NCBI RefSeq assembly: GCF_021028975.2
Contig: NC_059437.1
Location: 31,930,001-31,994,000, forward strand
Length of the DNA: 64,000 nt
Source of the DNA: Sphaerodactylus townsendi
Lineage: Eukaryota
Reading direction: 5' to 3'
Shown piece after piece: positions 2,114 to 64,000 of this stretch (its first letter is position 1; each line of letters opens with the position of its first letter). The notes beneath the pieces were generated by a model. The model was not told the DNA's origin and did no database searches. It saw only the letters and a program-made list of their open reading frames with translations. Both the position numbers and the translations under genes were made by a program.

Positions 2114-3886
2114 CTTGCACTTGGTACATGTACTAAAGCCCAATGGTGGGAAGTTTTAAGCTACCAGAAAAAAACAGACAGGAATGACACTTGCATCTAT
2201 TCTCTATTTGCACCTTTGATGGGTCTTCCAGGCACTCTCCCACTGGGGCTGGGCCCTGCTTAGCTTAACATACCAGCAATGAGCTATGTTATATTCTGCT
2301 GTCTTCAAATTAAAGGATTTCCTTTGCTACGCAGAACACTTGGTTGGGGGGTCACACTGCCATCAGCTCACCCCAGCCCTTAGCCACTACTGCTGCATCT
2401 CAACTCCCCAAGAGACAGACAAGACCAAGCTGGCTCCGTGTCAAACAGTTATATTTATAGCAAAAATAGGCTTTTACTTTCTTCCCCATACAGTGTTCTG
2501 TCCCCCACCCCCTCCCCAAAAACATTTACACAGTAAACAGGTTAGCTGATGCCCTGTGTGACAAGCCCACTCCCCACTTTGCAGTGACCCTCTGGCATCC
2601 CTCCGCCAGGCCCCTACACCCCCCAAGCCTTCCAAGAGATGCAGCTTCCGTGCAGTGATCCAGGCGATGTGCATACACAAATACCCAGAAAAAGGGTCGC
2701 CACTGCAGCATGCCAGCCAGGGGAGTATTCTATTGGACTTGCCGAGTGGCACATGCCAGCTTTAAAAATAGAGCACCAGTCTTCCCCCCCTCCCACCCGC
2801 TTCTCTGCTAGCAGAGAGCTCCTAGCAAGAGCACAGATTACAGGAAGCCATCACAGATGTAGCTTATGTCATCACAATGGACCCCTTGGAAGAAAAAAAA
2901 ATCATTGGGGGCACATATTCAAACCCTTGGACACCCCCTGTCCCCTTGCTGGCTCATGGAAGTACAGAGAAGCCATGAAGAAAAGCCAGATTGGGAAGGG
3001 TGTTCATATCAAGTAGAATGGAGGAGGGTTGGGGGGAGGGGGGGTCTGAAGCTGCTCTCTCCAACCACCACTCAAACAAAAATGAGCTTTGTAAGGGTTA
3101 AAGGAGTGGGTGCTGAGCAAGTGGGGGACTTTGGCCAGAGGAAATAGCTAGTAAGGAGAACAGGTAGGAAGACTCTAGCCAGGGAGAAAAACTGTGCAGA
3201 GTGAGGAGCCGGAGCTCTCACAGGCAAACAATACAACACGTTTCCTCCATGCACACACATATGTACCTTATCTTAGGCCAGAATAAGGTCTAAAAAGAAG
3301 ACAGACCTCACCAAGCCCTACCAGGACCTCCACCAGAAGCAAGAAATCACGCCACCTTTTCTTCCCGCTTTCCCCAACAAGAGAGTGTCCAAGAGCAGGC
3401 TGAGTCTTTCCCAGGAGTGGGTCGAGTTGGCACAACAATAAGAGTCAAGAATAGAGTGGGGAGGCAGAGAGAGGCCCACCTAATACTGTAAGGGATGTCT
3501 CAGTAGACAGAGCTACTGCCACTGGATCAAGGTTGGAGGAGATTGCACTGACTACCTTGCCCTGTATAGCGAAAAGTGTGTGTGTGTGGGGGGGGGGGGG
3601 TCAGTTTGTGGCCAGCCACTCTCTTCAGCAGACAGAGCTGCCCACAGGGATGGACAGCAGGAAGGGAGTTCAACTTCCAACACTGCTAAACTGGGCACAA
3701 ATGTCTTTGCACACAACCTTCGAATATCTTCCCCCTCCGAGTCCCAGTTTGGAAATTGCACATGAAAAGGGGTGTTTTGTCTCTCCTCACACCCCACAAG
3801 GGAAGGGAATGTTGTCAAGTAAACATGGTGGGTGAATGCCATGGCGCATGAGTCCTCTGCCCCAAAGGGGGTCACCAGCACCCCTT

Positions 3887-3976
3887 CTAGGAGACCATGT
3901 AGTGAGTAATCGCACGAAGAGCATACAACAGTTCTGCTTGAAGCCTGGCTTCCAGGATGAGAAGGTTCACGTGGAC
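3887..3976 (-). CDS. SESN4: Sestrin exon 9 ([29 protein letters not shown])
   Basis: 90 nt ending in TAG; canonical sestrin C-terminus. Confidence 0.95.
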
Positions 3977-6900
3977 CTGTGAAGGAAAGAGGAGAAGTCT
4001 GAAGCATCCTAACTGTCTGTGAGAATACACACATCTATACACTTGGCATCTTCAGGTATTAGCCCTGCTCTAGGTCTCTCTCCTGCCTCACCCAACTGCA
4101 ATTGAACAATAACTAACTAATAGGAAATAAGAGTCAGGCTGCATCAATTTCTAAAAACCCCTTTAGATGGTGTTACACATTATGTTAGACTTCTGGACTA
4201 AGCTCTGGGAGACACAGGTGCAAATTCCCACCCCACTGCGGAAGATCACTGGGTGACCTTGGAGTAGTCCTTCTCTCTCAGCTTGTCCTAAAATGGAGGA
4301 AGGAAAAACAATTTTGTAACCCTTTCGGGGGAGAGGTTGGTGGAAATAAGGTATAAATAAATAAAATTTCCTCCCACGCTGTACTGTTTTGAAATAAAAC
4401 ATCACATTGAACATTTCAAGGACTATGATCAAATACAGTATTTTGGTTAGGAGAGAGAAAAACTATCCCGCACTTTGCTCCAAAATTCTCAAACCCCAAG
4501 GCACTTGGGGGCCCCTTAGTTCAGGGGGAAAATGGGCTAAAAATATTTTTTAAAAGGAAAAAAAAACCATTCATAGACATCAATTCCCCCCCTCCAGGCC
4601 AAGGTCTTTAAAATAAAGCCAACCTCTTAAGGGAAAAAAACCCCATGAATTAAAGTCTTTGCTAAGCAGAACAGTGAGAGCCACAGAATTCATAGAAGGG
4701 GCGGGGGCGGGGAGGAGGAATTAACATTGCAGAACCAGAGTACAATGGGCATTGAAGTCCAACATGCTTAGCTATTAAAAGCAAAATTGTATGGCCTGTG
4801 AAGGGATGAGTACCACATGCCCAGTTCTCTGAAAGGACCGCTTCTTGTCTACTCCCATTCAAGGAAACAGCGCTGCTTTAATGTTTGGCCAGTTTGGCTT
4901 TCCGCTTCTCCTGGCATTCCCATGCAGAAGACTAACCAACCAGGAGGCATTCTTCAGCTGCTACAACAGAGTTGTCCCCCATCACATATCTGGCATGAGC
5001 TTACTCTCCTCTGCCTCTCACACTCACCCAATCTAATTAGAGTTTCTATTCACTTGGTGTGGCCGCAGTATTCCCCAATAAATACTGAAACATCAGTTCC
5101 TGTTTTAGGAGAGTGATGGTTAATTACTGCTTCTTTCTTTTCAGCCAAAGTAATTGCAGATGAAATTTTGCTCCTTTGATTTACAGCTGCTTCACTCCTT
5201 AGTTCCCAGTTGCTTATAGTAACTGAAGCATTCTTGAATTGAACTTTACCTGCAGTGGCATACCTAGGGGGTTGATACCCAATGTGGCTGTTACATGGGG
5301 GGCTCCTGCCCGCCAGAGGAGGCCAAGCAGCTGCACCACCACTGAGCTGCCAGTCGGCTGGGCGTGATAATGCTGCATTCTCCGGAGTCTCTGCTGCTGC
5401 CAACCAACACCATGCCACACCACATGCTGGCCACAAAAGCAGGCAACGTGTGGCAGCAAGTGAGAAGGCGAGCGCGCCTTGTATGCTGCCTCAGGCAGGG
5501 GCGTACCGCTTATAGGGACATGGAGTAATGACTACACGGGCAGTAGACCTGGACGCAGGTGTCAGCTCTGAGCAGTACACCTGGATGCCGGTGTGAGGTC
5601 CAGGCAGTAGACCTGGATGTTGGGCAGTAGACCTGGGCACCTGTGGAGGGGGTGTGTGGAAAATTCAGATCCCCAGGCTCCATTTTTCCTAGATATGCCT
5701 CTGGCCTGGGGCTCAGCCACCTGCCAATGATCAGCGCCACAGAGGATATGTCCTTCTGGTCACTTGAGGGAGATGCTGCCACTGTTGCTGCTGTGTGCAC
5801 ATCCAAGAAGAACCAGTTGACAGGTGGGCAAGAGGGAGGGCCACAGGGTGTGGTGGGGCACCTGGTGACTGTTCCACAAGGAGGTGGCAGGTGGAGGGGT
5901 TGAGTGCAAGCCGGATGTGTGGCCGGGGGCTTTGGGCAGAGAGTAGTAGTTAACATGCTTAGCAGTCACTTTGATTGCAAAGTGAATTAGTATCTCATTC
6001 CCTTATAACCAAGAATTGGTCATTACAAAGTGATTTCTAAGTAAGGACTGGTTCAAGAATGCTACATCCATTTGAAGGGGAACAGGAGTGAGTTAAGCAG
6101 CTGTGAAGAAGAGGAGCAAAATTTTGAAGGGACAGTTTGCAGGGAGAAGCAGAATCTTAGCTGAATAGTACATCTGAATAAACACAGTAAACGGATGTTT
6201 TGTTGGGGGCTTTCACGGGCAGAATCAACAGAGTGTTGTGAGTTTTCCCAAGTGTTCCATGGTCTGGTAGTTTTTGCTTCAGAGAATGCCAGGCATAGAT
6301 GTGTGCAAAATGCTAGGAGCAAAAACTATCAGACCGTGACTACAAGTCTGAAAAACGCACAACATCTACAGTAAACTGAATAAACATGGGCTTTACCGAT
6401 GGGACCTGGAATCGCAGAAAGGAGCATGTGTGCAAAACATTATGGTATTATGCAAATCCATTCTTAATTCTACTTGTAGCATTTTACAGAACAGTAGCGG
6501 CTGAAATGGGCCAAATGGGCCAGGTGTGGATGCCACCTTGCTGGTTGCTGCTACTGTTCCATCACCTTTGCAATGGTCACTTCCATATTCTGGAAACTGC
6601 TGAGAAACAAATTCATGGCACCCACAGTCCTTGCCCACAAGCCTCTGCCCACTGTAAATTGTGCACCCACACACACCTTTTCACTGTGCTTAAACTGTTT
6701 CCAGAAGCGTTCAAACATTTCAGGATTCAGCTTCTCTGGAGAGCAGGTCACAGTTTTTATGTAGAGCTTGAGTATGCGTTCCAGGAGATGGTTCACCTCT
6801 GCGTAGTCATAATCATCGTACCTGCAGAGTGAGTGACAGGAAAATGAAGCCCCTGCTCTTTTTGTAAAAAGGCACACGTGAGCACAGCTGCAAACTAGAC

Positions 6901-9900
6901 TCTGAAATGCTGAGACCCGCACAGGAACACTGCCTGTCTCTTTTTCAACCAAAGCTCAGGCAGCTCGGGAGAAGTGTTCACTTGAGTTCAGCAACAGAGA
7001 AACTTTCATACTTCCTGTCTCTGAAAGGGGCCTGGCTGTCCCTCCCCAGCCAAGGCACACAGACAAGCTCTTATTTCCCCTCCACCCACTGCATGCAGCA
7101 GATGCTAAAATGACTGGGACGGAGATGTGATGAAGGCAAGTTAGCCCATTGCCTAACCCTGCTTGCAGAGTGACTCTTGAGCCAGCCAGTGTTACTATCA
7201 AAACAGCCATTCGCAGCTTTGTAGATCTGAATATCATGGATTGTCAGGGCAATAGTGACAGTCTAGGCTTGTGCCTCTCTAAGACGTAGGTGGTTGTGAG
7301 GGGTCCTTTTCCAATGTTACAAGCTGGCAAGTCATTCAGAGTTTCTAGGGAGCTAAATCTGACTTTCCTCCCTTCCAACTCCACAATCACCCCCAGAAGA
7401 TGGAGAGGCAAGTACCTGATGCCAAACATGCAGTGGATATAGTTCCAAATCCCACGCTTAAACGTGGCATGTTCGCAGCCCTGCCGCTTTGCCATTGCAC
7501 AGCTCTGGAGGCCATCAACCTTCCGGAACTTCTCGTCTAACAGATGCCCAATATCCGAGTACAGCCTGTTCACCAGGGAGAAGCCATGATCTTCCCAGGA
7601 GTAATCCTGCCAAGAATGGAATGCAGGAAGAATGAGGGAGAAGATCAAAGAAGGAGAAGGCCAGGTTGGAACTACAGTGCGTTGAGGAAAGAAAGGTCCA
7701 GGTAAAACCAGATTCATCCCTTATCTCTCCCCCCACCAACTCATACCATGGCCCTCCTAAGCAGGCAATAGTGGCAAAACCCACCTGGACACGGAAAATC
7801 TGTGTCTGATTCTCGTCACGCTGAGCAAAGTCCTGGTATCCAAAGCTGGGGTCTTGAACGTAACAGGAGAGATCTGCAGGGCCCATAATTTCTTCATCAA
7901 AACCTAGAATATACACACAAGCAAAAGGCAGGTTGGAAAGGAAAAAGACACACCACAGCACTTAAGTACGCACCCACAAAGCATTGCTGTTCATGCTCTG
8001 CAGCCTCAAAGAAAGATGCAACAACCCAGGAAACAAAGGTTTTCCTTTTATTCTTTTTTTTTTTACTTTTTCCTACCTCTAAAATGGTGTAAATTAATGT
8101 TAAGGTAGCATGGGGTGCAACGTGTTTGCGGCACCCTCCCTCATTCTAATATTAGACCTTTTTTTTCCCTACAAGAAACACTGGAAATAAAAGGCATTTA
8201 TTTTTTCAATTTCAATAAATACACCAATTAATACCATTTTATATATTCAAGTGCTAAATGATACATTTCAAGTTGTCAAAGCAGAAAAAAATATGTATAG
8301 GTTTGATGAAGTATTCAATATAATCTGATCCACCCCGCCCCTCAAAATTTGAGGAGGTGAAAAAGGCCTTCAAAACTTCCAGAAATGTTTACCTCTCCGG
8401 CCCCAAAGATCTCATGAATTACCTTCTTCCCTCTCTGGCAGCCTCATCTCTTCCCGGGTCTCACTCTCCACCTGCAGCCTGTGAATGCGCCCACGTAGAG
8501 ACTCCAATTCCACACAGGAATCCAGCGACTGGAGAACAGAGAAAGCGGCAAAGCGCCATTCACTAATGAGCCCTGGCTACTGCCCCTGGCCCTGCAGCCC
8601 AAAAGGGCCACTGCATCCCACGACCTGACTCTGCAAAGATTGCCAGTCACGCCGACAGCTCCTCCCCTTCCCAGATCCCTAAAACGTTCCTCAGAAATGA
8701 CAGACCCGCTTGCGGTTGAGATGCAGCAGGTCCTGGCTGTAGCCATTGCCCACTTCACAGAAGCAGAGGCTCCCTGGGATGGTGAGCTTCAGCAAGCCCC
8801 TTCCCTCTGGACACACGTCCTGTTCACAGCCACAGCCAAAAGCAAAGCTGGCCAGCGCGTGGTAGTGAGCGAGCAGCACAACCGCGTGGACTAGTTCTGC
8901 CAGGGACCAGCTCTGTTCGCTGATCTTCAGTAACTTCTAGAAAGAGACACAGAAAAATGCTAGCACCGAGCCCGCAGCCAGACCAGTCCAGCCCCCCCCC
9001 CCCCTAATTCTGGACCTAGATAAAATTCAGATTTTGCAGCAGTGAACACAAAAGCAACTTCCCTGTGCCCACTCCCAGCAAAGGCGCTGGAAAACTGCAC
9101 AGCCAACAGAATATATTAACACAGAATCTAACTCTGTTAACTCATAATTTTACACAGTAGATTTTTGTCTAGATCCTCCATGGCTGCTACACAAAATCTG
9201 CCTAAATTTGGGGCAGTGGTGGTTAACAGCCGCCTTTGAATCTCTCAGATGAACCCACAGCCCAGGCAGCCTAACAGGACAGAGAAAAGGTGTGCTCCCC
9301 CGACTGTCCCCGGTCCCTTCCTGCTTGGCTCGCAGCCATTACCTCTATGTGCTCCTTGCCTACGAGCCATGGCCGATGTGCCAAGATCTTGTTAATCTCG
9401 CTGAGCTTGCGGAGTTTGGGGGGGATGCAATCCAGCCCCCTCAGCCACTGAGGGTCACCGCCAACCCGCAGGAACTGCAGCATGTGTAGATTCACCAGAT
9501 ACTGACACCGGTGCCGGGCAGCTGCCTGCAAGAGAGGGGTGAGACCCACCATGCCCGTGACCAAAGAGGAAAAGTATCCTGAACAAGCCTTTTTGCCCAG
9601 GATAGTCTCATCCACCCTTCCCATGCAGGCCAGCTCAGCGACTTCTTCTCTCTCTTGTGGTGTAGTGGACAGTGTAAGGCTAGGATCCGGGAGACCCAGG
9701 GCTGAACCCCCACTTTGACATGGAAACTTGCTGAGTGACCTTGGGCCAGTCACACACACTTATCTTAGCCTACCTCATAGGGTTGATATAAAGCTAAAGT
9801 GGTGGAGAAGAGAACAGCGTAAGTTGCTTTGGATCCTCATTGGGAAAAGAGGTGGGGTGAAGCACATTTTAAAAGAGGTGAAGCACGTTTTTAATACATA

Positions 9901-12900
9901 TATATATATATATATATAACCACTATTTGAAAGACAGAGGAATCTCTCTCATGGACACCCTCTGAGGTGACTGAAAAGAGAGCTGGCACGCATGACCCAG
10001 TTACTGCCAGACGCCCTCTGTCACCTGATGCCTTGGAATGTTTGCCTACTTAAGAGGTTTGGATTCAGAACGGCTTCCAAAATGGCAACGGTGGACAAGG
10101 GACAACGTTTGCAGCAAGCAAAAGGAAAACAGTATCATGCACATAGCTTGGATGGGGGCGGGGAGCAATAAGCTGCCTGTCCAGTGGATGGCCTGGCTTT
10201 GGTTCAGCTCTTGAAGAGGCTCCTCTCGTGGAAAATCCTGGCACTCACCATGATTGCAATGTAGTGACGGCAGTCAAAGGGCAAGGGGCCATCCATGTGC
10301 AGCAGGTAATGCTGCATCCGGAGGAAACTGTCCAGATAGTGCGGGTGGTAGCCCATCTGCTGTGTGATGGCCTCAAGTCGCCCCCTGCTGGCCAAGGCCT
10401 TCACAAAGAGCAACTGGGGAGCCCGCTCCTTGTCGCTCGCACTCATCTTTGCCACCTGTTGGGGTAGGGAGGAGAAAGAGAGAGAAAGGTTTTTTCTTAC
10501 ACCTTTCTTCCTTGTGTGGAGGAAGTGTCCAAAGGGTAACCAGTTTGTATCAGGGAGGCCTGACCAGAAGGCGAAGTGGCATACAGCAAGCTTGGGGAAC
10601 ACGGAAGGTGGTAGCAAGGAATGGTCTATATCTGAAAGGAACATCTGACATGGGAAAGTGCAGCGAGGAAGCGGGTGTTCCTGCCCTGGGCTATGCGTAT
10701 TCTGCAAAACAGCTGCTCCAGAGACCTTTTGGACCAGCGTGGGCAAAGGGGAAATACCCAGCTAGTTCGTACACGTTGTTTTTAGTTTTGTTTTTAATGT
10801 GCAGTACCACAGTGTTTGTTGTATTAAATCAAGAGTGTCCAACTCTGGTGCCCCAGACGTTTCATGGACTACAATTCCCACCAGTCTCGGCCAGCATGGC
10901 CTATTAGCCATAATGGTAGGGGCTGATGGGAATCTTAGTCCATGAACATCTGGGGCACCAGAGTTGGACATCCCTGCATTAAATCACTTCGTATTGTTTT
11001 TACATCGGCGTTACCCACCTCGGGTCTGGGATGCAGGGAAGAAAGAAAGATAAAGAAATGAATACATGCTGAGCTGGAATCTGCACAAAGTGAATTCAGA
11101 TTCTGCGCTATCAAATCTGGGATTCTAGCATAAGCATTTATTGTCATTGTGCACGCACAACGAAATTTACAGCAGCATTCCTCGATGCACACAATTTCAG
11201 ACTCATACCCCATCCTCACTTTCCCCTTCCTCCACCCATCCCTACACAGCCCCAAACACATCAACACGAAGAATTCAGAATTGGAGTGCTCCCTTTCCCC
11301 TCTGTTATAGGGATATCATTTCTGGTGTGATTCCATCTTCCTGAAAGGATGGGAATCTACATCTACATCCTGTACAAGTTATAAATAACATAGGTATAAT
11401 TTATTGCATATGCAAGTTTGGGAAGAGTTGTTGGAGCAGTATTTTAAAAAGTTCTGCATATAAATGAAACAACTGTGCTCATTTGCATTCAGGCTATGCT
11501 GCTTTCATTAAGGAGAGGAAAAGGGTAACACACCACATTGAACCGTCCCTGCTCAGGAGGAGAAACAAAAACCCCTTGCCAAAAGCCCTGTGCCTCAACC
11601 CCCAGGGTCATGTTCGGGTGCCTGCACCCCACTTCCCCCTCATCATCCTTACAGTTGGTCTTCTCAAGCTCAATGGGGACTGGCTCACATCCACTTGGGA
11701 GATTTCCAGGGCAGGGTCTGAGCCCCATGCGGCACTCCAGGGTCACCTCTAAGCTCCATAACAAGTTTTTCTGCCCCGGCATCAACTGCCTGGAAATGCC
11801 AAAGTCATGCCAAAGGCAGGTGCCACTCTCTGCAGGTCATGGATTGTATGCTCCAGTGGGTACCAGCAGAGGGCAGCTAATAGGGCATTTGACTCTTGCA
11901 CAGACCTAGGCCAGAATAAAAGCCCACCAAGGAGAATTAACTTCCAGCAGCCTGCCCCACTACACTACTGGCATTGACAGAAGCCTGCCATCCTTCCTGG
12001 CCAAGGATAGGAAGTTGCTGGTAATAGCAAGTCGTCTCTTACTTCACTCTGTGGGGGGCCAAAGCACCAGTGCATCTACCTCAACTCCTCCTCCCTCCCC
12101 TTTCTGTAATTTTCCTTATAAGCATTTTCCAAATGATTTCCACACTGAAGGAATCTCTGGCTCATGAAAGCTCCTATTGAAACAAAAGGGGCTATGCGTT
12201 AAGATGCAGCTAGACTTTTGCTTTATTTGCAACATTACAGCCATCCTCATTCACTGGAGATTTTCCACAAGGTCCCTGCACCGCTCCTCAAGTTCCCTTT
12301 TCTTAGCTATCTGCTGGCCCTGGGACTCTCTCTAGGAAAGGGGGAAGATAGTGAAAAATCATTCTATTCCACTTATCAAAGCAGTCGGCCCCCTTCCACT
12401 CCTTAAGACTCCACAGGGCCTTCAGACAACATTCCTGAGCTCTGAACTAACACAAGCTCGGGAAGCCCCAGAGCATGGGCATTCAGCTACTTCAGAAACG
12501 GTCACCTAGTCTCCCAATACCAGCCAGGAGAAATCCCCTGCGATTCCAGCTGTGCAGCAACACCTGCTGTGCCAAGGATTATTGCAGTGCCAAAGTTCTT
12601 GACTAGGAGAGCTGTAGGGAACCTTCCCCCTTCCCCCAATTTCTGCACTGTTTTTCGTCTCCAGAAAACACTCACCACCAACAAACACTGCCTTTTGCAA
12701 TTCTGAGCAACTTTCCTCATTTCAGTATAGTATGCCCTAAAACAAAACATGGGACTGGGAAGTAAATATTCCCTTTTCCTTCTGTTATAGGGATATCAAT
12801 TCTGGTGTGATTCCATCTTCCTGAAAGGATGGGAATCTTCAAAACCAGGTGCAGATTAGAGACAAAGAGTAATAGGACCAAGGTACAGTAAAAGAGATTT

Positions 12901-14434
12901 CACCGAAACATTAGGAAGAACTTCATGATGGTCAGGGCTGTTTGAAAGTGGAATATGCTGCCTCGGAGGGTGGTGGAGGTTTTTAAACAGAGGTTTGATG
13001 GCCATCTATCAAGGATCCTTTGACTATGTCTTCCTGAATGGCAGGGGGGTGGACTTCATGGCCTTGTGGTTTCTTCCAACTCTATGATTCTATGATCCTA
13101 TTCTATGACAAGGTGGGCACTTTCGTTACTTTTACAACTGAGCACTCCAATTCTAAACTGCTTTCTATCCTACACACAGGTAGGATTAAACTTTGCAAAA
13201 AAGACCCACTTATTTGAGGTGTGCTGCCAGGACCATCCCATGCAACTTCTGTGTGCCTCTCTGGATATATGATAGGGAGGGGGGAAACAGGACAAAACCA
13301 TCATCCAACAGGGGAGGGGATTTTCACTCTGGAAAATAATGTTCTAGGGTTCCTAGACTTTGGGGGGCGAGGGCTATAGGCCCTGTCCCAGAAGAAATTT
13401 GGAGCAAAAGAAAAAAAATAAAGAAGAATGAAAAAAGAAAGGGAACAACCACACCCCCTCTTCCATGCAGAAGGGGCAGCCGACCCAATAAAGAGGCGAG
13501 CAAGTCAGCCCGGTGCCGGTCCATTGTCTCCCCGCGCCCCCCGCCCCCGCCAGCTGCAGAAGGCGAACCGCAGCGCCCCCTAGCCGCGCAACCGCCGAAC
13601 CGCAGGAGGAAAGAGAGAAAAACAACTTTGATTGGCAGGGCGGGGAGGAGGAGGAAGAGGCTGGAGCATCCCGCATCCCCGCTGTTGCTGCTGCCTCGGA
13701 CAGGACAAAGGGAGCGCAGGGCGAGCGCGCAGAGGCAGCGTTCCGGAGCCGGACCGCGCAGCTCTCGCAGCAGGGGCGCGTGCACGCACCCCGACTGCAC
13801 CCCCAAAGTTTCCCTCAGGGCCGGTTTAGCTACTGCAGCCCCCCCGCCCCTGCAGCTTCCCTGGAGCAGCAAAGGGAAGGAGCCTTTCAGCAAACCCCCC
13901 CGCCCCCCGGGATACAAAACCCACCTTCTGTTCACCCAAGAATATGGACAGGGAGCACCAGGTATTACTGCAGGACTTGCAAGCGGTTATGCTGGCGCGG
14001 GGGGGGGGGGGGGAGCCTTAGCAGGACTGGAGAAGCGAAGGGGGCGTGCTGCTAGACCCGATGCCTGTTCAGGGAGAAGCAAGCGCCATGCAATTAATTC
14101 AGTGGGGTGCAATTAATTCAGTGGGGTGGCTTTTCTTCCGTGCAAAAGCGCAGGGCTACAGACGAAGGAGCCGGGGGGATGGGTTTGAGGAACAGAATAG
14201 ACGTGCTGAAATTTGGGGACGGGGGTAAAAGGAGAGTTTGTCGGTGGTTTCTTACAGCAGCTTTTGCCTGGAAAGAAGCTGGGGTGGGGGGAGGATCGAC
14301 TGAGCCCCTGCCTTGTCCGGGGTCCATTCGTTTTGCTGGCAGCACCCGGTGCTTTCGCCGCCGGTTGGGCTTACCTGCAGCCTCTGGCACTGTTTTCCCC
14401 GGGGGTGCTCCGTGCTCTGGGGGCAGAGGATCAT
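3887..14434 (-). CDS. SESN4: Sestrin-family protein, divergent fourth paralogue (sestrin-4-like / 'sestrin-3-like'); 9 coding exons, 443 aa
   Basis: Exons 14434-14375, 10455-10249, 9525-9343, 8936-8706, 8528-8423, 7903-7785, 7606-7416, 6821-6677, 3976-3887. All GT-AG, phases consistent, total 1332 nt. Contains hallmark sestrin motifs [88 protein letters not shown]. Family call is certain; the paralogue name is inferred from divergence and synteny. Confidence 0.9.
6677..6821 (-). CDS. SESN4: Sestrin exon 8 (YDDYDY...FKHSEK)
   Basis: 145 nt, DD motif. Confidence 0.95.
7416..7606 (-). CDS. SESN4: Sestrin exon 7 ([11 protein letters not shown]...HCMFGIR)
   Basis: 191 nt, AG/GT bounded. Confidence 0.95.
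7785..7903 (-). CDS. SESN4: Sestrin exon 6 ([26 protein letters not shown]...FRVQ)
   Basis: 119 nt, DP.FGY.DF motif. Confidence 0.93.
8423..8528 (-). CDS. SESN4: Sestrin exon 5 ([23 protein letters not shown]...)
   Basis: 106 nt, AG/GT bounded, linker-helix similarity, phase 0->1. Confidence 0.85.
8706..8936 (-). CDS. SESN4: Sestrin exon 4 ([15 protein letters not shown]...LNRKR)
   Basis: 231 nt, [15 protein letters not shown] motif. Confidence 0.93.
9343..9525 (-). CDS. SESN4: Sestrin exon 3 (AAARHRC...KEHIE)
   Basis: 183 nt, carries the C-x-Y-x4-H redox motif and LAHRPWL. Confidence 0.95.
9899..9918. repeat. (TA)n microsatellite
   Basis: About 10 units. Confidence 0.9.
10249..10455 (-). 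CDS. SESN4: Sestrin exon 2 ([10 protein letters not shown]...RHYIAIM)
   Basis: AG/GT bounded, 207 nt, MDGPLP motif. Confidence 0.93.
10830..10976. mobile_element. Palindromic hAT MITE (147 bp)
   Basis: Self-complementary; 8-bp TSD TATTAAAT/CATTAAAT. Confidence 0.85.
12860..13108 (+). mobile_element. Older CR1 3' fragment
   Basis: CR1-like 3'UTR ending TTCCAACTCTATGATTCTATGA. Confidence 0.8.
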
Positions 14435-28694: not shown

Positions 28695-28880
28695 CTATTC
28701 AACGTCAATCTTGAGGACAGAGTCCGTGGAGACTGCAGGCACCTCTCCGGCTCTGCCCAGGATGTCATTGCCCAGGGGCAAATATCCTCCACCAGGAACC
28801 AATTCTGTGACATGGCAGATGCTTTCACGGTAGCTAGACTTGAAGCTCTCCACAGCATCCTTGGGGACTCCAGCCCATTC
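28695..28880 (-). CDS. IL2RG: IL2RG exon 8 (EWAGVPKDAVESFK...KIDVE*)
   Basis: 186 nt, W.GV.K...ES and C.V.E motifs, TAG stop. Confidence 0.92.
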   Translation of the reverse strand, partial: EWAGVPKDAVESFKSSYRESICHVTELVPGGGYLPLGNDILGRAGEVPAVSTDSVLKIDVE

Positions 28881-31800
28881 CTGGGAACAGAAATGGCATA
28901 TTGAGAAGAACACGCCTCTCCTTACCCCCTACGGATCCCCCAAGGATCCGGATCCCCCAAGGATCCGTATTGGGACCAGTGCTCTTTAACTTATTCATAA
29001 ATGACCTGGAAGTAGGGGTGGGTAGTGTGGTGGCCAAGTTTGCAGATGATACCAAATTATGTAGGGTGGTGAGAACCACAAAGGATTGCGAAGAGCTCCA
29101 AGCGGACCTTGATAAATTAGGTGAGTGGGCTCAGAAATGGCAAATGCAGTTCAATGTAGCAAAATGTAAAGTGATGCACATAGGGGCAAAAAATCCAAAC
29201 TTCACATACACGCTACAGGGGTCAGTGCTATGGTCTGAATAGAGGAAGAGAGGGATTTGAAGCGTCTTAGTTGATAGTTCCATGGGAATGTCAACTCAAT
29301 GCATGGCAGCTGTGAAAAAGGCAAACTCTATGCTGGGGATAATTAGGAAAGGAGTTGATAATAAAACTGCAAAGATTGTCTTGCCCTTATAAAAAGCAGT
29401 GGTGCGACCGCACTTGGAGTACTGTGTTCAGTTCTGGTCGCCACATCTCAAAAAGGATATCGAAGAGATAGAAAAAGTGCAGAGAAGGGCAACGAGGATG
29501 ATTGATGGATTGGAGCACCTTCCTTATGAGGAGAGGCTACAGCATTTGGGACTCTTTAGTTTGGAGAGGAGACGTCTGAGGGGGAATATGATTGAAGTCT
29601 ATAAAATTATGCATGGGGTAGAAAATGTTGACAGAGAGAAATTTTTCTCTCTTTATCACAATACTAGAACCAGGGGGCATACATTGAAAATGCTGGGGGG
29701 AAGAATTAGGACTAATAAAAGGAAACACGTGTGATTGGTGTTTAGAATATGCTGCCATAGGAGGTGGTGATGGCCACTAACCTGGATAGCTTTAAAAAGG
29801 GCTTGGACAGATTTATGGAGGAGAAGTCAATCTATGGCTACCAATCTTGATCCTCCTTGATCTCAGATTGCATATGCCTTAGCAGACCAGGTGCTCAGGA
29901 GCAGCAGCAGCAGAAGGCCATTGCTTTCACATCCTGCATGTGAGCTCCCAAAGGCACCTGGTGGGCCACTGCGAGTAGCAGAATGCTGGACTAGATGGAC
30001 TCTGGTCTGATCCAGCAGGCTAGTTCTTATGTTCTTATGTTCTTAAGGTATCCCCACCTCACTCTCCTGGAAGTTTCCTGGTTCTATCTGTTCTGTGGAC
30101 TGGCTGATTTTTCCCCTACATGCTGGTTCTTCTTTTCTTTTTGCCTTTTGTCCAGTTGCTCAGATGATGTGTGACACAGAATCCTGCTCATGATAATATG
30201 GAGACCCAGGGCCTAACCAGATGGGATGCTGGGAATTCTGTGGCTGGCGCTCCCCAAGCAGAGTTGCCAACCTACAGATAGGGCCTAGAGAATTTTCCTG
30301 GAATTACAACTGACCTTTCAAGAAAATAGCAGCTTTGGAGGCTGGACTCTGTGGCATCACATCCCTCCTGAGGACTCCACCATCCCCAGGGTCCACCCTA
30401 AAATCTCTGTGCATTTCCCAACCAGAGTTGACAACCCTATCCCCAAGCATACTTTCTTTGTAAACTCAGTTCAAGGCTATGGCTCAGAACAAGGGGCTTA
30501 ATCCTTCCCCAACACACACAAGCACACAGTGCTGCCTTGACACCCATGGTCAATCCGAGCATCACACCAACAGAATTCTCTTTGAAACTTGTTCTGAATC
30601 GTTCTTAAGCAAGGCATGCTCTGACCTAGATGACCCACATTGACCCGAACTCGTCAGATCTTGGAAACTTAGTAGGCCCAGCTACGGTTAACACTTGGAC
30701 AGGGTATCACTAAGGAAATCCAGGATCTCTATGGAGAGGTAGGTAATGGCAGAGTCAACTATAGTTTGGCAGCACTTTACCACCGCCTACATAGGGAACA
30801 ATTCTCTACTTTTGGACATGATACCATCAGAGGTTCTTACTGAAAAATTGCCCTGGTAGGCTGTGAAGAGCTCTTCAAATTTGTGGCTGGGATTGGGGAT
30901 TCTGGGCATCAGGACCACCCATACCCTGTAAGAAGAGAAAGTGGGTTAAGGGTGGCAAAGCTGCAGGGTTTGCACTGTAGAGCTTGCAAGGGCTTATCAA
31001 CCTCCCTGTGAAAAGACCTCATCCTGCATACAGAGGCTAATGGAAGCATGATTCCCGAGTGATTATTCACAGAGAAACTATATTACTGATACATCTAGAG
31101 AATCATTTGTTAGAGCAAATTCACAAAAACCAGTTCTATCCATTTATCAAACAGTAATTTGCATTTTTGTCACAGGGTCAGATTAGTTTCCAGTCCATGA
31201 TGGGATGCATATGGAAACAGCTACCTCTTCACTTATGAAAAATCATCTTGGTTGAGTGGCAGAGCAGATGCACATCTCATGTGCTTGGGTCCCAATGGAG
31301 TTCCTGGCCTATCAGGGCCCAGTTTTTGGTCTTGTGGTCAGCCTTTGATCTGCCTCAGGACAACCCAATCCTCTACTGTTCATTCTCCTTAATACCTTTC
31401 CATTTCTTTATATGGATTTTCAAATTACCTTTGGAATTGTCCTCTTGAATGAAAATCTAAACTGAGCATCTTCCATTTGTACTATCTCTATGCACATGGT
31501 TCTTGGCAGCCATTTCCTACAGGTAAATGTCTGTGAAATTCTAGACAATTTTAATTTGTGCTGTTACATATATAAAATAGCATTTTATTACACTGTTCTC
31601 TAATCCTGTGATCCTGCTTTATTGTACATGCTGTGTTTAGTACATCCCTGTGTAGGTTCATAATCCAGTATCGCTGTGTTGATTTATTGCATATAACATT
31701 CTGTGTTCTATGTAATCCACTTTGAGTCTCAGGAAGAATAGTGGACTATAAATGAACAAATAAATATATCAGTCAGGCCTGTCCTGGACATTTTAAAATC

Positions 31801-37800: not shown

Positions 37801-40522
37801 TAAGTTGCTATGCCTTAGCTGTGACTTGTGCTAGACTCCTGTCCTAGAGAGAGAATCCAAATGGTTTAGCGGCTAACCTTTTTAGGGATATTTGTGTCAG
37901 GGATGCTTTTAAGATATGGAAGAGAGTTTGTCACCTTGACAGAAGGCCCCAGTACAGCAGGGCCGTGATTTTGTGTCTCATTCCTCTAGAGCTATGGGCC
38001 ATGTTAGAGTTTGGTCCTCTAGGACAACATACCTAGGTTGAGCAGGAACATGGGGCTTCCGCTGGAGAGGCTGCTGCCATCGTTGCTTGTATTGACATAA
38101 ACATTGAAGGACATATATTGAATCTGGCTTCTGTTGAACCAGCATCCTTTGTTAACACCATCACTTTGGAGGTAATGCTTGCACTCCACCATTGGATTTT
38201 TTGCATACCTAAGTAAAAAAGATAAGAAGAAAGAGGGTTGGTGTGAACCTTCCTATGCTGTTCTAGGGAGCCTGCAGAGATCCCCATCTACAGGGCAACA
38301 GTCTTGCCCAAGGAGGCTGCAGCTTCCCAGCAATCTCCACGGTCAGCTCTGTCTCAGACAAGGCCAGGGGAACCTAACCTTGTTGAATCTGCAGGCATTT
38401 TTAGAATTTAAAGAAAGGCTAGTGGGCACCACCATAAAATGGCTGACATGGGGATAGTGAGTCTGGTCACAAAATGCTGCCTCCTTTTGTTGCTCCTGGC
38501 ATTATTTTCACTGTGGAAATAATTTGGTCTGATGTAGGTTCTCCAACCAGGGAGACTACTAGGGACAACATTCAGTGGTGGAGCTACAAGGGGACGGGGG
38601 GCATTGCACCCCGCCCCTTTCCCCCTCACCCTGCCAGGCCTGGCCCTGCCCCACCAGCCTGGCCCGTTTTCAACTGGCAGAAAGCTGTTTTCTGCCGGCT
38701 GGAGAAGGTAAAGGGGGCCCCTGCAGGGGGGCGGAAAAAATGGAGTGGTCACACTCCTGCCCAGCTACGATTCTGACAACTCTGCAGAGGAAGGCCATGG
38801 CAAACCACACTTGCTTCTCACTTATCTTGAAAGCTCCTTGCTGGGGTCGCCATAACTTGCCTGCAGTTTGGGTGGCACTTTATACACACCCACACCCACA
38901 GATTCTCCAACCACACTAGCACTTTGAAGGCAGGTTTTCAAACTCATAAGAAAATGTGTGTCTCTGGCCAAGCTGAAGGCGCATGGCTGTGATGTGCCTG
39001 ACTGATAGGAGCTCCGCTTTTTGCTACTCAGCCAACTGGCAGGGAACCGTCTGAAGCTCCCTCGTTTATTTCTTTTATGCTCAACTCTAGACCCTGTAGA
39101 TTTTATCACCAAGACTGAAAAAGCAAACGAGTGCCAGAAGATGATATCAGGCACTGTGGTACCCATGGGCGCCATCTTGAGGAGTTGTTGTACTAGACTA
39201 ACTTTGAAAACCTAAGCTAAACAAAACAAAAAGAGCTCAAGGGACATTAAGCAGAGAAAATGCAGAGGAAAATGTTCCAGCCACTGTGCAATCAACCAGT
39301 ATCTGAGCAACCGAAGACTTTTCAGTGGTTGGAAATCTCTCGCACAAAGAATGTGGACAGGTATAAATTCTCCAACCACAGAAGCCTCAGGAAGGAAGAA
39401 GTTCTACCTGCTGTTGTGCTGTTGAATCTGGCAACCATATCGGTGCTGAGGCACCCCAATCCACATCAACAATGATCAAAGCCACCAAGGATCAGTTCCT
39501 TTAATGTATCTGCTGATCCCAGTGATCACTGACACTTTGTGATCCATAGGTGCATAGCACGTTCTATGCAAAGCCTGCCATCTTTCCCCAGAGATCACCT
39601 GTACCAATGGCATTGTTTATGTTCTAGGGGAGACTCTAACCCAGATGTGGACATGTGGCTGTTGGTTGGTTACCAAAGAAGTTTGCTGCACAATCAGAAG
39701 AAATGCAGCCAAGGTGGGGGAGGGCTGTTGGATCTGGGGGACAGGCAAGAAGAAGGGGTCCCTCGGGCAATATGGCAAAAGGGGCATACCAGTAGTACAG
39801 AGAGTAATTCATGGCTGGTTTCTGGCTGCTGTCCCACTCACAGATCATGTAGTCATCATTATAGACTATGCAGTTCACATCTGTAAAAAAGAGCCCAGAA
39901 GGCCTAAGTGAGTTTCTTTCTTTTGTTTCTATTTTTTTATTTTCTTTCAATGCACTGTGCAGCTGGATTTTAGAAGAAGAAGAAGAAGAAGAGTTTGGAT
40001 TTATATCCCCCCTTTCTCTCCTGCAGGAGACTCAAAGGGGCTTACAATCTCCTTGCCCTTCCCCCCTCACAACAAACACCCTGTGAGGTAGGTGGGGCTG
40101 AGAGAGCTCCGAGAAGCTGTGACTAGCCCAAGATCACCCAGCTGGCATGTGTGGGAGTGCACAGGCTAATCTGAATTCCCCAGATAAGCCTCCACATCTC
40201 AGGCGGCAGAGCGGGGAATCAAACCCGGTTCCTCCAGATTAGATACACGAGCTCTTAACCTCCTACGCCACTGCTGTTGAATAGGCCCATGTCTAAGAGT
40301 TTGTGGATGTGCTCAAATAAAAACTCCAAACCTTTGCCAGGTGAGGTTCCTTCACTATCCACCCTTCTGCCTTCTCTGTGAGCTGCTTGGAGTGGTGGTG
40401 GGGGGGGGGAGGGGGGAGGGATGTTTACCTTGAGGCTTAGTTGTGGCTGCATTTCGCTTGCTCAAGCTCACGAACAGCAAGGCCAGCATCAGAAACATCT
40501 TGGGTTCCTTGCAGACATCCAT
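28695..40522 (-). CDS. IL2RG: Interleukin-2 receptor common gamma chain; 8 exons, 349 aa
   Basis: Exons 40522-40429, 39880-39790, 38208-38033, 36583-36441, 34997-34835, 31977-31866, 30925-30841, 28880-28695. All GT-AG, total 1050 nt. Signal peptide, C-x9-C-x-W cytokine-receptor motif, VKP.PP.NLT, LPSVD..K.Y.F.V, TM segment, Box1 MPRIP. Head-to-head with MED12 as in human. Confidence 0.93.
28933..30046 (+). mobile_element. CR1 LINE, 5'-truncated (RT C-terminal half plus 3'UTR), in IL2RG intron 7
   Basis: PQGSVLGPVLFNLFINDL...KFADDTKL RT motif, VRPHLEYCVQFWSPH, (GTTCTTAT)n tail; several stops/frameshifts. Confidence 0.95.
30841..30925 (-). CDS. IL2RG: IL2RG exon 7 (Box1, VWVVLMPRIPNPSHKFEELFTAYQGNFS)
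   Basis: 85 nt, AG/GT bounded. Confidence 0.93.
31866..31977 (-). CDS. IL2RG: IL2RG exon 6 (transmembrane)
   Basis: 112 nt, VLIPFVSLLLLLLLIFILMRMER. Confidence 0.92.
33814..33954. mobile_element. Second copy of the 141-bp Harbinger-like MITE
   Basis: Near-identical to 26433-26573. Confidence 0.8.
34835..34997 (-). CDS. IL2RG: IL2RG exon 5 (LPSVDPEKRYAFYVKSK...WSLTAGPVFWG)
   Basis: 163 nt, WSXWS-position exon. Confidence 0.93.
36441..36583 (-). CDS. IL2RG: IL2RG exon 4 (VKPNPPVNLT...CLEHMVEY)
   Basis: 143 nt, start of second FNIII domain. Confidence 0.93.
36829..37474. mobile_element. TAGGGTTGCCA-TIR DNA element with a nested CAGTG...CACTG element (36916-37452) containing a ~195-bp internal tandem duplication
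   Basis: Outer TIR TAGGGTTGCCA/TGGCAACCCTA; unit ATCTCCTATTAGCTCCCATTGGAAACAATGGGG occurs twice. Related TIR elements at ~18218-18424, ~30262-30440, ~36126-36305. Confidence 0.65.
38033..38208 (-). CDS. IL2RG: IL2RG exon 3 (YAKNPMVECKHYL...GCWF...)
   Basis: 176 nt, second Cys pair. Confidence 0.9.
39790..39880 (-). CDS. IL2RG: IL2RG exon 2 (DVNCIVYNDDYMICEW...NYSLYYW)
   Basis: 91 nt, conserved Cys pair and Trp. Confidence 0.93.
39973..40276 (-). mobile_element. tRNA-derived SINE, same family, in IL2RG intron 1
   Basis: Reverse complement of 1815-2113, (GAA)n tail. Confidence 0.85.
40429..40522 (-). CDS. IL2RG: IL2RG exon 1 (signal peptide)
   Basis: MDVCKEPKMFLMLALLFVSLS..., G|GTAAAC donor; the true start could be the second Met. 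Confidence 0.8.
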
Positions 40523-45449: not shown

Positions 45450-62736
<17,287 letters not shown>

Positions 62737-62869: not shown

Positions 62870-64000
62870 TTAAGAACATAAGAACAAGCCAGCTGGATCA
62901 GACCAAAGTCCATCTAGTCCAGCTCTCTGCTACTCGCAGTGGCCCACCAGGTGCCTTTGGGAGCTCACATGTAGGATGTGAACGCAATGGCCTTCTGCGG
63001 CTGTTGCTCCCGATCACCTGGTCTGTTAAGGCATTTGCAATCTCAGATCAAAGAGGATCAAGATTGGTAGCCATAAACCGACTTCTCCTCCATAAATCTG
63101 TCCAAGCCCCTTTTAAAGCTATCCAGGTTAGTGGCCATCACCACCTCCTGTGGCAGCATATTCCAAACACCAATCACACGTTGCGTGAAGAAGTGTTTCC
63201 TTTTATTAGTCCTAATTCTTTCCCCCAGCATTTTCAATGAATGCCCCCTGGTTCTAGTATTGTGAGAAAGAGAGAAAAATTTCTCTCTGTCAACATTTTC
63301 TACCCCATGCATAATTTTATAGACTTCAATCATATCCCCCCTCAGCCACCTCCTCTCCAAACTAAAGAGTCCCAAACGCTGCAGCCTCTCCTCATAAGGA
63401 AGGTGCTCCAGTCCCTCAATCATCCTTGTTGCCCTTCTCTGCACTTTTTCTATCTCCTCAATATCCTTTTTGTTGAGATGCGTGACCAGAACTGGACACA
63501 GTACTCCAAGTGCGGTCGCATCTTCACTGCTTTATATAAGGGCATGACAATCTTTGCAGTTTTATTATCAATTCCTTTTCTAATGATCCCCAGCATAGAG
63601 TTTGCCTTTTTCACAGCTGCCATGCATTGAGTTGACATTCCCATGGAACTATCAACTAAGACGCCTAAATCCCTTTCCTGGTCTGTGACTGATAGCACTG
63701 ACCCCTGTAGCGTGTATGTGAAGTTTGGATTTTTTGCCCCTATGTGCATCACTTTACATTTTGCTACATTGAACTGCATTTGCCATTTCTGAGCCCACTC
63801 ACCTAATTTATCAAGGTCCGCTTGGAGCTCTTCGCAATCCTTTGTGGTTCTCACCACCCTACATAATTTGGTATCATCTGCAAACTTGGCCACCACGCTA
63901 CCCAACCCTACTTCCAGGTCATTTATGAATAGGTTAAACAGCACTGGTCCCAAAACGGATCCTGGGGGACACCACTCCCGACATCTCTCCATTGTGAGCA
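62870..64000 (-). mobile_element. CR1 LINE, same young subfamily, in MED12 intron 26; runs off the window
   Basis: ORFs 63450-63992 and 63058-63444 carry RT motifs; highly similar to 28933-30046. Confidence 0.95.

Follow-up and report, generated by a model that had tools for sequence, protein, structure and literature searches.

Can a sestrin keep its hold on GATOR2 and yet no longer let go of it in response to leucine? The question is raised by a gene on the minus strand of a 64,000-nucleotide (nt) stretch of the Sphaerodactylus townsendi genome (RefSeq assembly GCF_021028975.2, contig NC_059437.1, positions 31,930,001 to 31,994,000; hereafter the window, in whose own numbering all coordinates are given). 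The original prediction, made from the sequence of the window, was that this gene encodes a sestrin paralogue with a remodelled leucine pocket but intact GATOR2-binding surfaces, and hence a candidate regulator of mTORC1 that is insensitive to leucine or responds to another ligand. We find that the locus is the squamate orthologue of SESN4, a fourth sestrin paralogue of gnathostomes, and that it is intact, spliced and expressed. Judging from its sequence, the canonical leucine-triggered release of SESN4 from GATOR2 is very unlikely, because the threonine triad of the leucine lid, the latch tyrosine and the relay helix alphaL2 have been lost, and binding to GATOR2 is likely, because the docking surface is intact. 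The separate paralogue and its remodelled pocket are thus borne out by a tree and by the aligned lids, and the suggestion that leucine does not release the protein is strengthened by the missing alphaL2. The loss of alphaL2 and a conserved motif at the tip of the lid, neither of which formed part of the original prediction, are new here.

That the gene encodes a sestrin can be seen from the lid exon alone, whose 64-residue peptide (7416-7609, minus strand) aligns without a gap to residues 340-403 of human SESN2 (PDB 5dj4/9lwf, E = 1.8e-18) and matches positions 306-369 of the Pfam family PA26 (PF04636, E = 6e-29). The exons of the window were searched singly, and the full-length orthologues P0151, P0197 and P0270 served as proxies for the whole protein. 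The full-length Lerista orthologue matches PA26 over profile positions 17-445 of 445 (E = 8.5e-174), and the sestrin motifs WSLAEL, DDYDY and HSEKVH are all present in the window, in exons 4, 8 and 8/9, respectively. Beyond the lid exon, SESN2 numbering follows an alignment of the full-length gecko orthologue to SESN2.

The lid had been placed in exon 7 (there are nine) and aligned without gaps to SESN2, and both points are correct, as are the six lid and pocket changes that had been read from it: T374Q, Y375S, T377A, T386H, L389F and R390K are all present in the gapless SESN2 register. An alignment check shows that the changes are clade-wide: T374, Y375, T377 and T386 are replaced in 23 of 23 SESN4 sequences, whereas almost every SESN2, SESN3 and invertebrate sequence retains them. 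Of the latch between residues 86 and 375, H86 is kept and Y375 has become Ser in the window (S, G or N across the clade). The charged anchors of the pocket have fared differently, E451 being kept in all 23 SESN4 sequences and R390 being replaced by Lys, with its charge kept, in 22 of them. The possibility that the lid threonines are merely shifted is ruled out, as the anchors G383, [E/D]385, F389, K390 and R391 line up with SESN2 with no gap and the lone Thr in the lid of the window, at position 388, is variable in SESN4 orthologues (V19 T8 A7 G1). We do not count two of the changes as evidence for lost leucine sensing: F389 is also the state of invertebrate sestrins, and since the fly Sestrin binds leucine with a dissociation constant of about 100 µM (PMC11429811), L389F is not diagnostic; T327A is set aside in the same way, as A327 is also the SESN3 state. 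Those features that had been described as retained, namely YDDY (D406/D407), WSLAEL (S190), the W444/F447/E451/H454/V455 motif and C-x-Y-x4-H, are indeed found, in exons 3, 4, 8 and 8/9, with the W444/F447/E451/H454/V455 motif spanning the exon 8/9 junction. H86 and L261 are retained too, both in the alignment of the gecko orthologue to SESN2 and as the same residues in the exons of the window.

Not only the residues of the lid but also the places at which it tolerates change differ from those of other sestrins. We compared 35 different lid exons of SESN4, spanning sharks to birds but not ray-finned fishes, with 68 canonical lid exons. In SESN4 the former leucine-contact positions are variable (Q/H/K/R at 374, S/G/N at 375, A/S/T/V at 377 and P/H/S at 386), and it is A379, K380, R381, Q382, G383, C384, [E/D]385, F389, K390, R391 and G392 that are invariant or nearly so. 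In canonical lids the situation is reversed, with T374, Y375, V384, D385, T386 and R390 fixed and positions 380-383 free to vary. The lid-tip motif A-K-R-Q-G-C-[E/D] is nearly invariant outside ray-finned fishes, and mean pairwise identity within SESN4 is 0.66 for the lid, 0.87 for the lid tip and 0.86 for the rest of the C-domain; between SESN4 and SESN3 of one species, identity is 0.30-0.35 in the lid and 0.77 in the rest of the C-domain. The lid was thus rebuilt once, early in jawed vertebrates, and a different part of it has been constrained since; the divergence is not decay. Ray-finned fishes have lost the tip motif and have a changed pocket floor (F447L and an altered HSEKVH); sturgeon-like and gar-like fishes have 3 lid residues deleted, and teleosts have 8.

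Closure of the lid is also only the beginning of release. According to the 2025 cryo-electron microscopy (cryo-EM) study of GATOR2 with SESN2, leucine compacts the lid, after which alphaL1 (L261) and alphaL2 (F287, E288, K291) can form; F287 then pushes R404, R404 pushes R338, and R338 clashes with R46 of WDR24 and breaks the salt bridge of D406, leading to release, and leucine fails to release the E288A/K291A, R404G and R338A variants of SESN2 (PMC12507694). AlphaL2, recognizable by its R-F-E-x-E-K core, occurs in all the SESN2, SESN3 and invertebrate sequences that we aligned, apart from one gappy and unassigned sequence (P0047). The SESN4 of sauropsids, amphibians, lobe-finned fishes and ray-finned fishes lacks it through a deletion (of about 14 residues in sauropsids and ray-finned fishes), and in shark and chimaera SESN4 an unrelated sequence stands in its place. 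AlphaL1 with L261 remains in SESN4, as do R338 and R404.

The residues through which SESN2 contacts GATOR2 (its subunits WDR24, SEH1L and MIOS) in the cryo-EM study are D104, L191, I195, Q340, E345, Y349, L351, I352, L355, D364, D406, D407 and L472, and SESN3 occupies the same site (PMC12507694); S190 is a GATOR2-binding residue identified by mutagenesis. All or nearly all of the 23 SESN4 sequences retain D104, S190, L191, Q340, E345, L351, L355, D364, D406, D407 and L472, together with R338 and R404, and the contact differences from human SESN2 (Y349F, I195V and I352V) are residues of SESN3, itself a GATOR2 binder. The GATOR2-binding surface is therefore intact, as had been proposed, in nearly all of its cryo-EM contact residues. 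An AlphaFold2 model of the orthologue P0151 (and so not of the window's own protein) has two AhpD-like lobes whose cores reach a pLDDT >90. The top Foldseek matches of the Lerista SESN4 model are all SESN2 (E = 1e-27, TM 0.82-0.92 normalised to target), and the model superposes on both leucine-bound and GATOR2-bound SESN2.

Which sestrin is this? When the lid exon was compared with 1.84 billion representative proteins, three close matches (92-95% identity) were followed by others at 64% or less, and a homology search started from one of the close matches returned proteins named "sestrin-3-like", "sestrin-1-like", "Sestrin 3" and "Sestrin 4". SESN4 is found in squamates, birds, turtles, crocodilians, salamanders, lungfish, coelacanth, sharks, rays, chimaera and ray-finned fishes, and the true SESN3 of the same groups shows 52-56% identity in the homology search. 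In a maximum-likelihood tree SESN4 forms one clade (SH-aLRT 100), as do SESN3 (99) and SESN2 (99); from sharks to birds, the branching within SESN4 mirrors the species tree, and the coho salmon 'Sestrin 4' falls inside the clade. The tree was built without SESN1 and does not fix the branching order among SESN2, SESN3 and SESN4. The distinction from SESN1 is drawn instead from four separate zebrafish genes and from unnamed lid-exon fragments that are probably SESN1. In zebrafish, sesn1, sesn2, sesn3 and sesn4 are separate genes (PMC12145846). Among the 120 matches listed, no mammal or frog sequence lies in the SESN4 range, which is weak evidence of absence. We note that the gene itself is not new, because sesn4 is annotated in fish, and the zebrafish gene is p53-induced (PMC12145846). 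In the literature searched, a single paper mentions it by name, and a 2024 review on the evolution of sestrins gives three of them in vertebrates (PMC11429811).

The gene in the window comprises nine coding exons on the minus strand (3887-14434, 443 codons), as determined by tblastn of orthologues together with inspection of splice sites and phases. Its introns are all GT..AG, the phases are consistent, and the reading frame is without stop or frameshift. The exons are given below in the order of transcription, with the joints found in spliced contigs:

14375-14434, minus strand: exon 1, with the ATG at 14434, 20 codons and a GT donor at 14374, placed from orthologue N-termini by tblastn and by reading the sequence
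10249-10455, minus strand: exon 2, 207 nt, carrying H86 and D104, with a pyrimidine-rich tract, an AG acceptor and a GT donor
9343-9525, minus strand: exon 3, 183 nt, carrying the C-x-Y-x4-H motif; spliced joint 8936>9343 in run X4
8706-8936, minus strand: exon 4, 231 nt, carrying WSLAEL (S190, L191), with a basic N-R-K-R at its end
8423-8528, minus strand: exon 5, 106 nt, carrying alphaL1 with L261 and no alphaL2 after it; joints 8528>8706 and 7901>8421
7785-7903, minus strand: exon 6, 119 nt, the transducer segment, with R338 and Q340 at its end
7416-7606, minus strand: exon 7, the lid exon, 191 nt, SESN2 341-403, carrying the GATOR2 contacts E345, F349, L351, L355 and D364 and the remodelled lid; joints 7605>7784 and 6817>7412 in X4
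7454-7510, minus strand: the lid-coding segment, codons 33-51 of exon 7, corresponding to SESN2 373-391, with the tip A-K-R-Q-G-C-E
6677-6821, minus strand: exon 8, 145 nt, carrying R404, D406, D407, W444, F447 and E451
3887-3976, minus strand: exon 9, 29 codons and the stop codon TAG at 3887-3889, carrying H454, V455 and L472 and encoding the extra C-terminal residue typical of SESN4; joint 3974>6675 in X4

Contigs of three public runs of the same organism were placed on 3880-9600; the exon 1/2 junction lies beyond that stretch. The kind of run X4 is not recorded (no RNA run is on record for the organism), yet spliced contigs are present in it, at a depth of 500-970 compared to 12-65 in introns. 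They are joined at the boundaries 9/8, 8/7, 7/6, 6/5, 5/4 and 4/3, and a loose end at 9526 runs into the end of exon 2. The X4 contigs thus confirm each junction between exons 2 and 9, and we conclude that the gene is transcribed and that its splicing, including that of the lid exon, follows the model. The three samples show the same exon sequence, and the sole exonic variant among the variants listed (17 more stand outside that list), at 8526, is synonymous.

Several further observations concern the gene and its products. Exon 3 (183 nt, in frame), the exon that encodes C-x-Y-x4-H, is skipped in annotated isoforms of Heteronotia (P0197) and Hemicordylus (P0192); the form containing it is the one in the spliced contigs of this organism. 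An isoform of ray SESN4 (P0238) begins with an additional segment, homologous to the GPSAFIP exon of SESN2 and SESN3, that is absent from the other SESN4 models; in the window, the first intron (10456-14374) is 3.9 kb long. Within intron 8 (5599-5789 and 6172-6362), DNA-run depth reaches ~6900 compared to ~40 nearby, and many contigs have loose ends at 5671-5706, indicating a high-copy interspersed repeat. At the exon 4/5 junction (8706-8717 and 8520-8528, minus strand), directly before alphaL1, lies the motif R-[K/R]-[K/R]-S-[L/V]-D-[S/Y], a basic Ser motif that is kept from sharks to birds and is not found in SESN2 or SESN3. It resembles a basophilic-kinase site and could be a regulatory site of phosphorylation beside the helix that bears L261.

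How, then, might SESN4 act? The reading we favour, and to which we give about an even chance, is that SESN4 binds GATOR2, restrains mTORC1, is not released by leucine and is controlled mainly by its abundance. By retaining the two-lobed fold and the acidic and hydrophobic surface, SESN4 would dock onto the WDR24-SEH1L part of GATOR2 and, once docked, would restrain mTORC1; with the lid threonines and the latch Tyr replaced, and with alphaL2, which would otherwise couple lid closure to R404 and R338, deleted, leucine would not release it. Its effect would then be set mainly by the amount of protein present, in which it may be compared with the stress- and p53-induced sesn4 of zebrafish, a gene among the most strongly p53-induced in that species (PMC12145846). 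Searching the window for p53 response elements gave 2 matches compared to 3.7 expected by chance, which adds no evidence. In turkey, a "sestrin-3-like" gene, which may be SESN4, is responsive to thermal stress. A number of points weigh against control by abundance alone or against the structural argument behind it. The lid tip, A379-K-R-Q-G-C-[E/D]385, has stayed nearly invariant for ~450 million years, and E451, W444, F447, L261 and a basic residue at 390 have been kept, features for which a purely constitutive binder has no obvious use. Cys is found at R338 in two squamate sequences. When lizard SESN3 and Lerista SESN4 were modelled with AlphaFold2 from the same 66-sequence alignment, SESN3 had a pair of linker helices (273-290 and 298-313) and a beta bridge in its lid, and SESN4 had one six-residue, low-confidence linker helix and a coil lid, but both linkers are modelled with low confidence, so that the structural contrast is weak and the models, while agreeing with the sequence evidence, add nothing to it. 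Lastly, SESN3 has every canonical leucine residue yet binds leucine very weakly (PMC11429811), and lists of residues therefore predict behaviour imperfectly.

The same conservation could mean that SESN4 is a regulated sensor of some other input, be it a small molecule or a redox or modification signal, with release by a route independent of alphaL2; this is the main rival reading, and we entertain it only tentatively. A putative small molecule could be held by E451 and K390 in a tighter pocket, in which F389 would stand with W444 and F447; a redox or post-translational signal could act through Cys384 and the Lys and Arg residues of the lid tip, or through the basic R-[K/R]-[K/R]-S site, which is clade-wide in SESN4 and is not shared with SESN2/3. 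The inverted pattern of constraint would fit such a sensor, with 379-385 and 389-392 near-invariant and 374-377 and 386-388 variable, the opposite of canonical sestrins, and so would a lid tip that is as conserved as the rest of the C-domain, the retention of E451 and K390 in nearly every sequence, and the fact that ray-finned fishes both lost the tip motif and changed the pocket floor. Nevertheless, the loss of alphaL2 removes the only route that has been described from the lid to the GATOR2 interface, the coupling of lid tip to pocket floor carries no statistical weight because it is seen in a single lineage event, and conservation of the tip could reflect a structural role or a contact with another protein. 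Somewhat more doubtful is the specific form of this idea, in which SESN4 of sharks, lobe-finned fishes, salamanders, reptiles and birds would be a GATOR2-bound sensor of a non-leucine input, and in which that input (another metabolite, redox or phosphorylation) could be read through A-K-R-Q-G-C-[E/D] and the E451/K390 pocket. It is unlikely, we think, that SESN4 acts mainly outside the GATOR2 branch, in an antioxidant, AMPK-linked or mTORC2-linked role, with its conserved surface serving another partner. Several functions of sestrins have been reported (PMC11429811), and bony-vertebrate SESN4 retains C-x-Y-x4-H in its N-terminal AhpD-like lobe, but chimaera and ray SESN4 have Ser in place of the redox Cys, so a redox function is not clade-wide, and the most strictly kept residues are those that contact WDR24 and SEH1L (PMC12507694). 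Some contacts between the lid and leucine are reportedly made through the backbone, according to the crystal-structure paper on SESN2. A low-affinity leucine sensor that uses backbone contacts of the new lid might thus be imagined, given that E451, a basic residue at 390, W444, F447, L261, R338 and R404 are kept; we nonetheless regard it as quite improbable, as three threonines and the latch tyrosine are gone, mutation of T374 or T386 alone abolishes leucine binding (PMC11429811), alphaL2 is missing, and ray-finned fishes delete 3-8 lid residues. That the divergent lid reflects the decay of a dying copy or an artefact of assembly might be suggested by the lower conservation of the whole lid (0.66) relative to the rest of the domain (0.86), but is virtually inconceivable. 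A pseudogene or artefact is ruled out by the intact frame, the abundant spliced transcript, the same exon sequence in three samples and a clade conserved since sharks and bony vertebrates split.

To our knowledge, what is understood of nutrient sensing by mTORC1 comes almost wholly from mammalian SESN1/2, CASTOR1 and SAMTOR. SESN4, which occurs in chicken, lizards, salamanders and fish, has been kept over ~450 million years, and its combination of an intact GATOR2 docking surface with a replaced lid and a deleted relay helix amounts to a natural experiment on the 2025 allosteric model (PMC12507694). If binding of SESN4 to GATOR2 is constitutive, as in the reading that we favour, then the gene would show how a sensor can turn into a pure, expression-controlled brake. 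If instead the lid tip reads another signal, then there would be a new mTORC1 input in non-mammalian vertebrates that mammals have lost, and one with relevance to the growth biology of poultry and fish. In the literature searched, which is itself incomplete, neither the remodelled lid nor the missing alphaL2 nor the lid-tip motif was described.

Chicken and the window share the surroundings of SESN4, with an IL2RG-type receptor gene and MED12 as neighbours in both. In chicken (L001), as in the window, the order is a MED12-sized gene (2167 residues in chicken), the IL2RG-type gene and SESN4. Apart from SESN4, the following features lie in the window:

39639-40031, minus strand: IL2RG-like cytokine-receptor exon (Pfam CRLF2_D1/IL6Ra-bind, with scores near the cut-offs)
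~45990-53200, plus strand: MED12-type gene, with an N-terminal exon near 46.0 kb and Pfam Med12 at 48989-49312
28844-29731, plus strand: reverse transcriptase fragment (RVT_1, E = 3e-12)
63061-63998, minus strand: reverse transcriptase fragment

The MED12-type gene is oriented away from SESN4 and is ~31 kb distant. In goose, one gene model (P0157) has Il2rg and PA26 domains fused. IL2RG and MED12 are neighbours at human Xq13.1 also, where no sestrin is known. The two reverse transcriptase fragments are closely alike in protein sequence and probably belong to a retroelement of the long interspersed nuclear element (LINE) type.

Like SESN2 and SESN1, which are leucine sensors (PDB 5DJ4; GATOR2-bound 9LVJ/9LWF), SESN4 has the PA26 fold and the residues that contact GATOR2, and like SESN2 it keeps the R338/R404 pair, the pocket floor W444/F447/E451, L261 and H86. 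Unlike SESN2, it has Thr374/377/386 and Tyr375 replaced, Lys in place of R390 and no alphaL2, and it has a new conserved lid-tip motif, no N-terminal GPSAFIP segment and one extra C-terminal residue. Teleost sesn4 (si:zfos-80g12.1 of zebrafish, and the coho salmon gene) belongs to the same orthologue group and is also without the lid threonines and alphaL2, but unlike the SESN4 of the window it has a lid that is 8 residues shorter, no A-K-R-Q-G-C and the floor change F447L. With vertebrate SESN3, SESN4 shares ~77% identity outside the lid within one species, as well as F349, V195 and V352, and in the well-aligned N- and C-domains it is equally or more similar to SESN3 than to SESN2. SESN3 differs from SESN4 in keeping the canonical lid and alphaL2, in forming a separate clade and in lying at a different locus; the two coexist in coelacanth and chimaera in the tree, and separate sequences of both are found in lizards and birds. 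According to published reports, SESN3 associates with GATOR2 regardless of amino acids (PMC5618232) and binds leucine very weakly (PMC11429811), and this is the behaviour that we predict for SESN4. The earlier proposal of a nutrient-signalling branch absent from mammals is consequently only partly right: SESN4 itself appears to be lacking in mammals, but a leucine-insensitive GATOR2 binder has already been reported there in SESN3, as a constitutive one.

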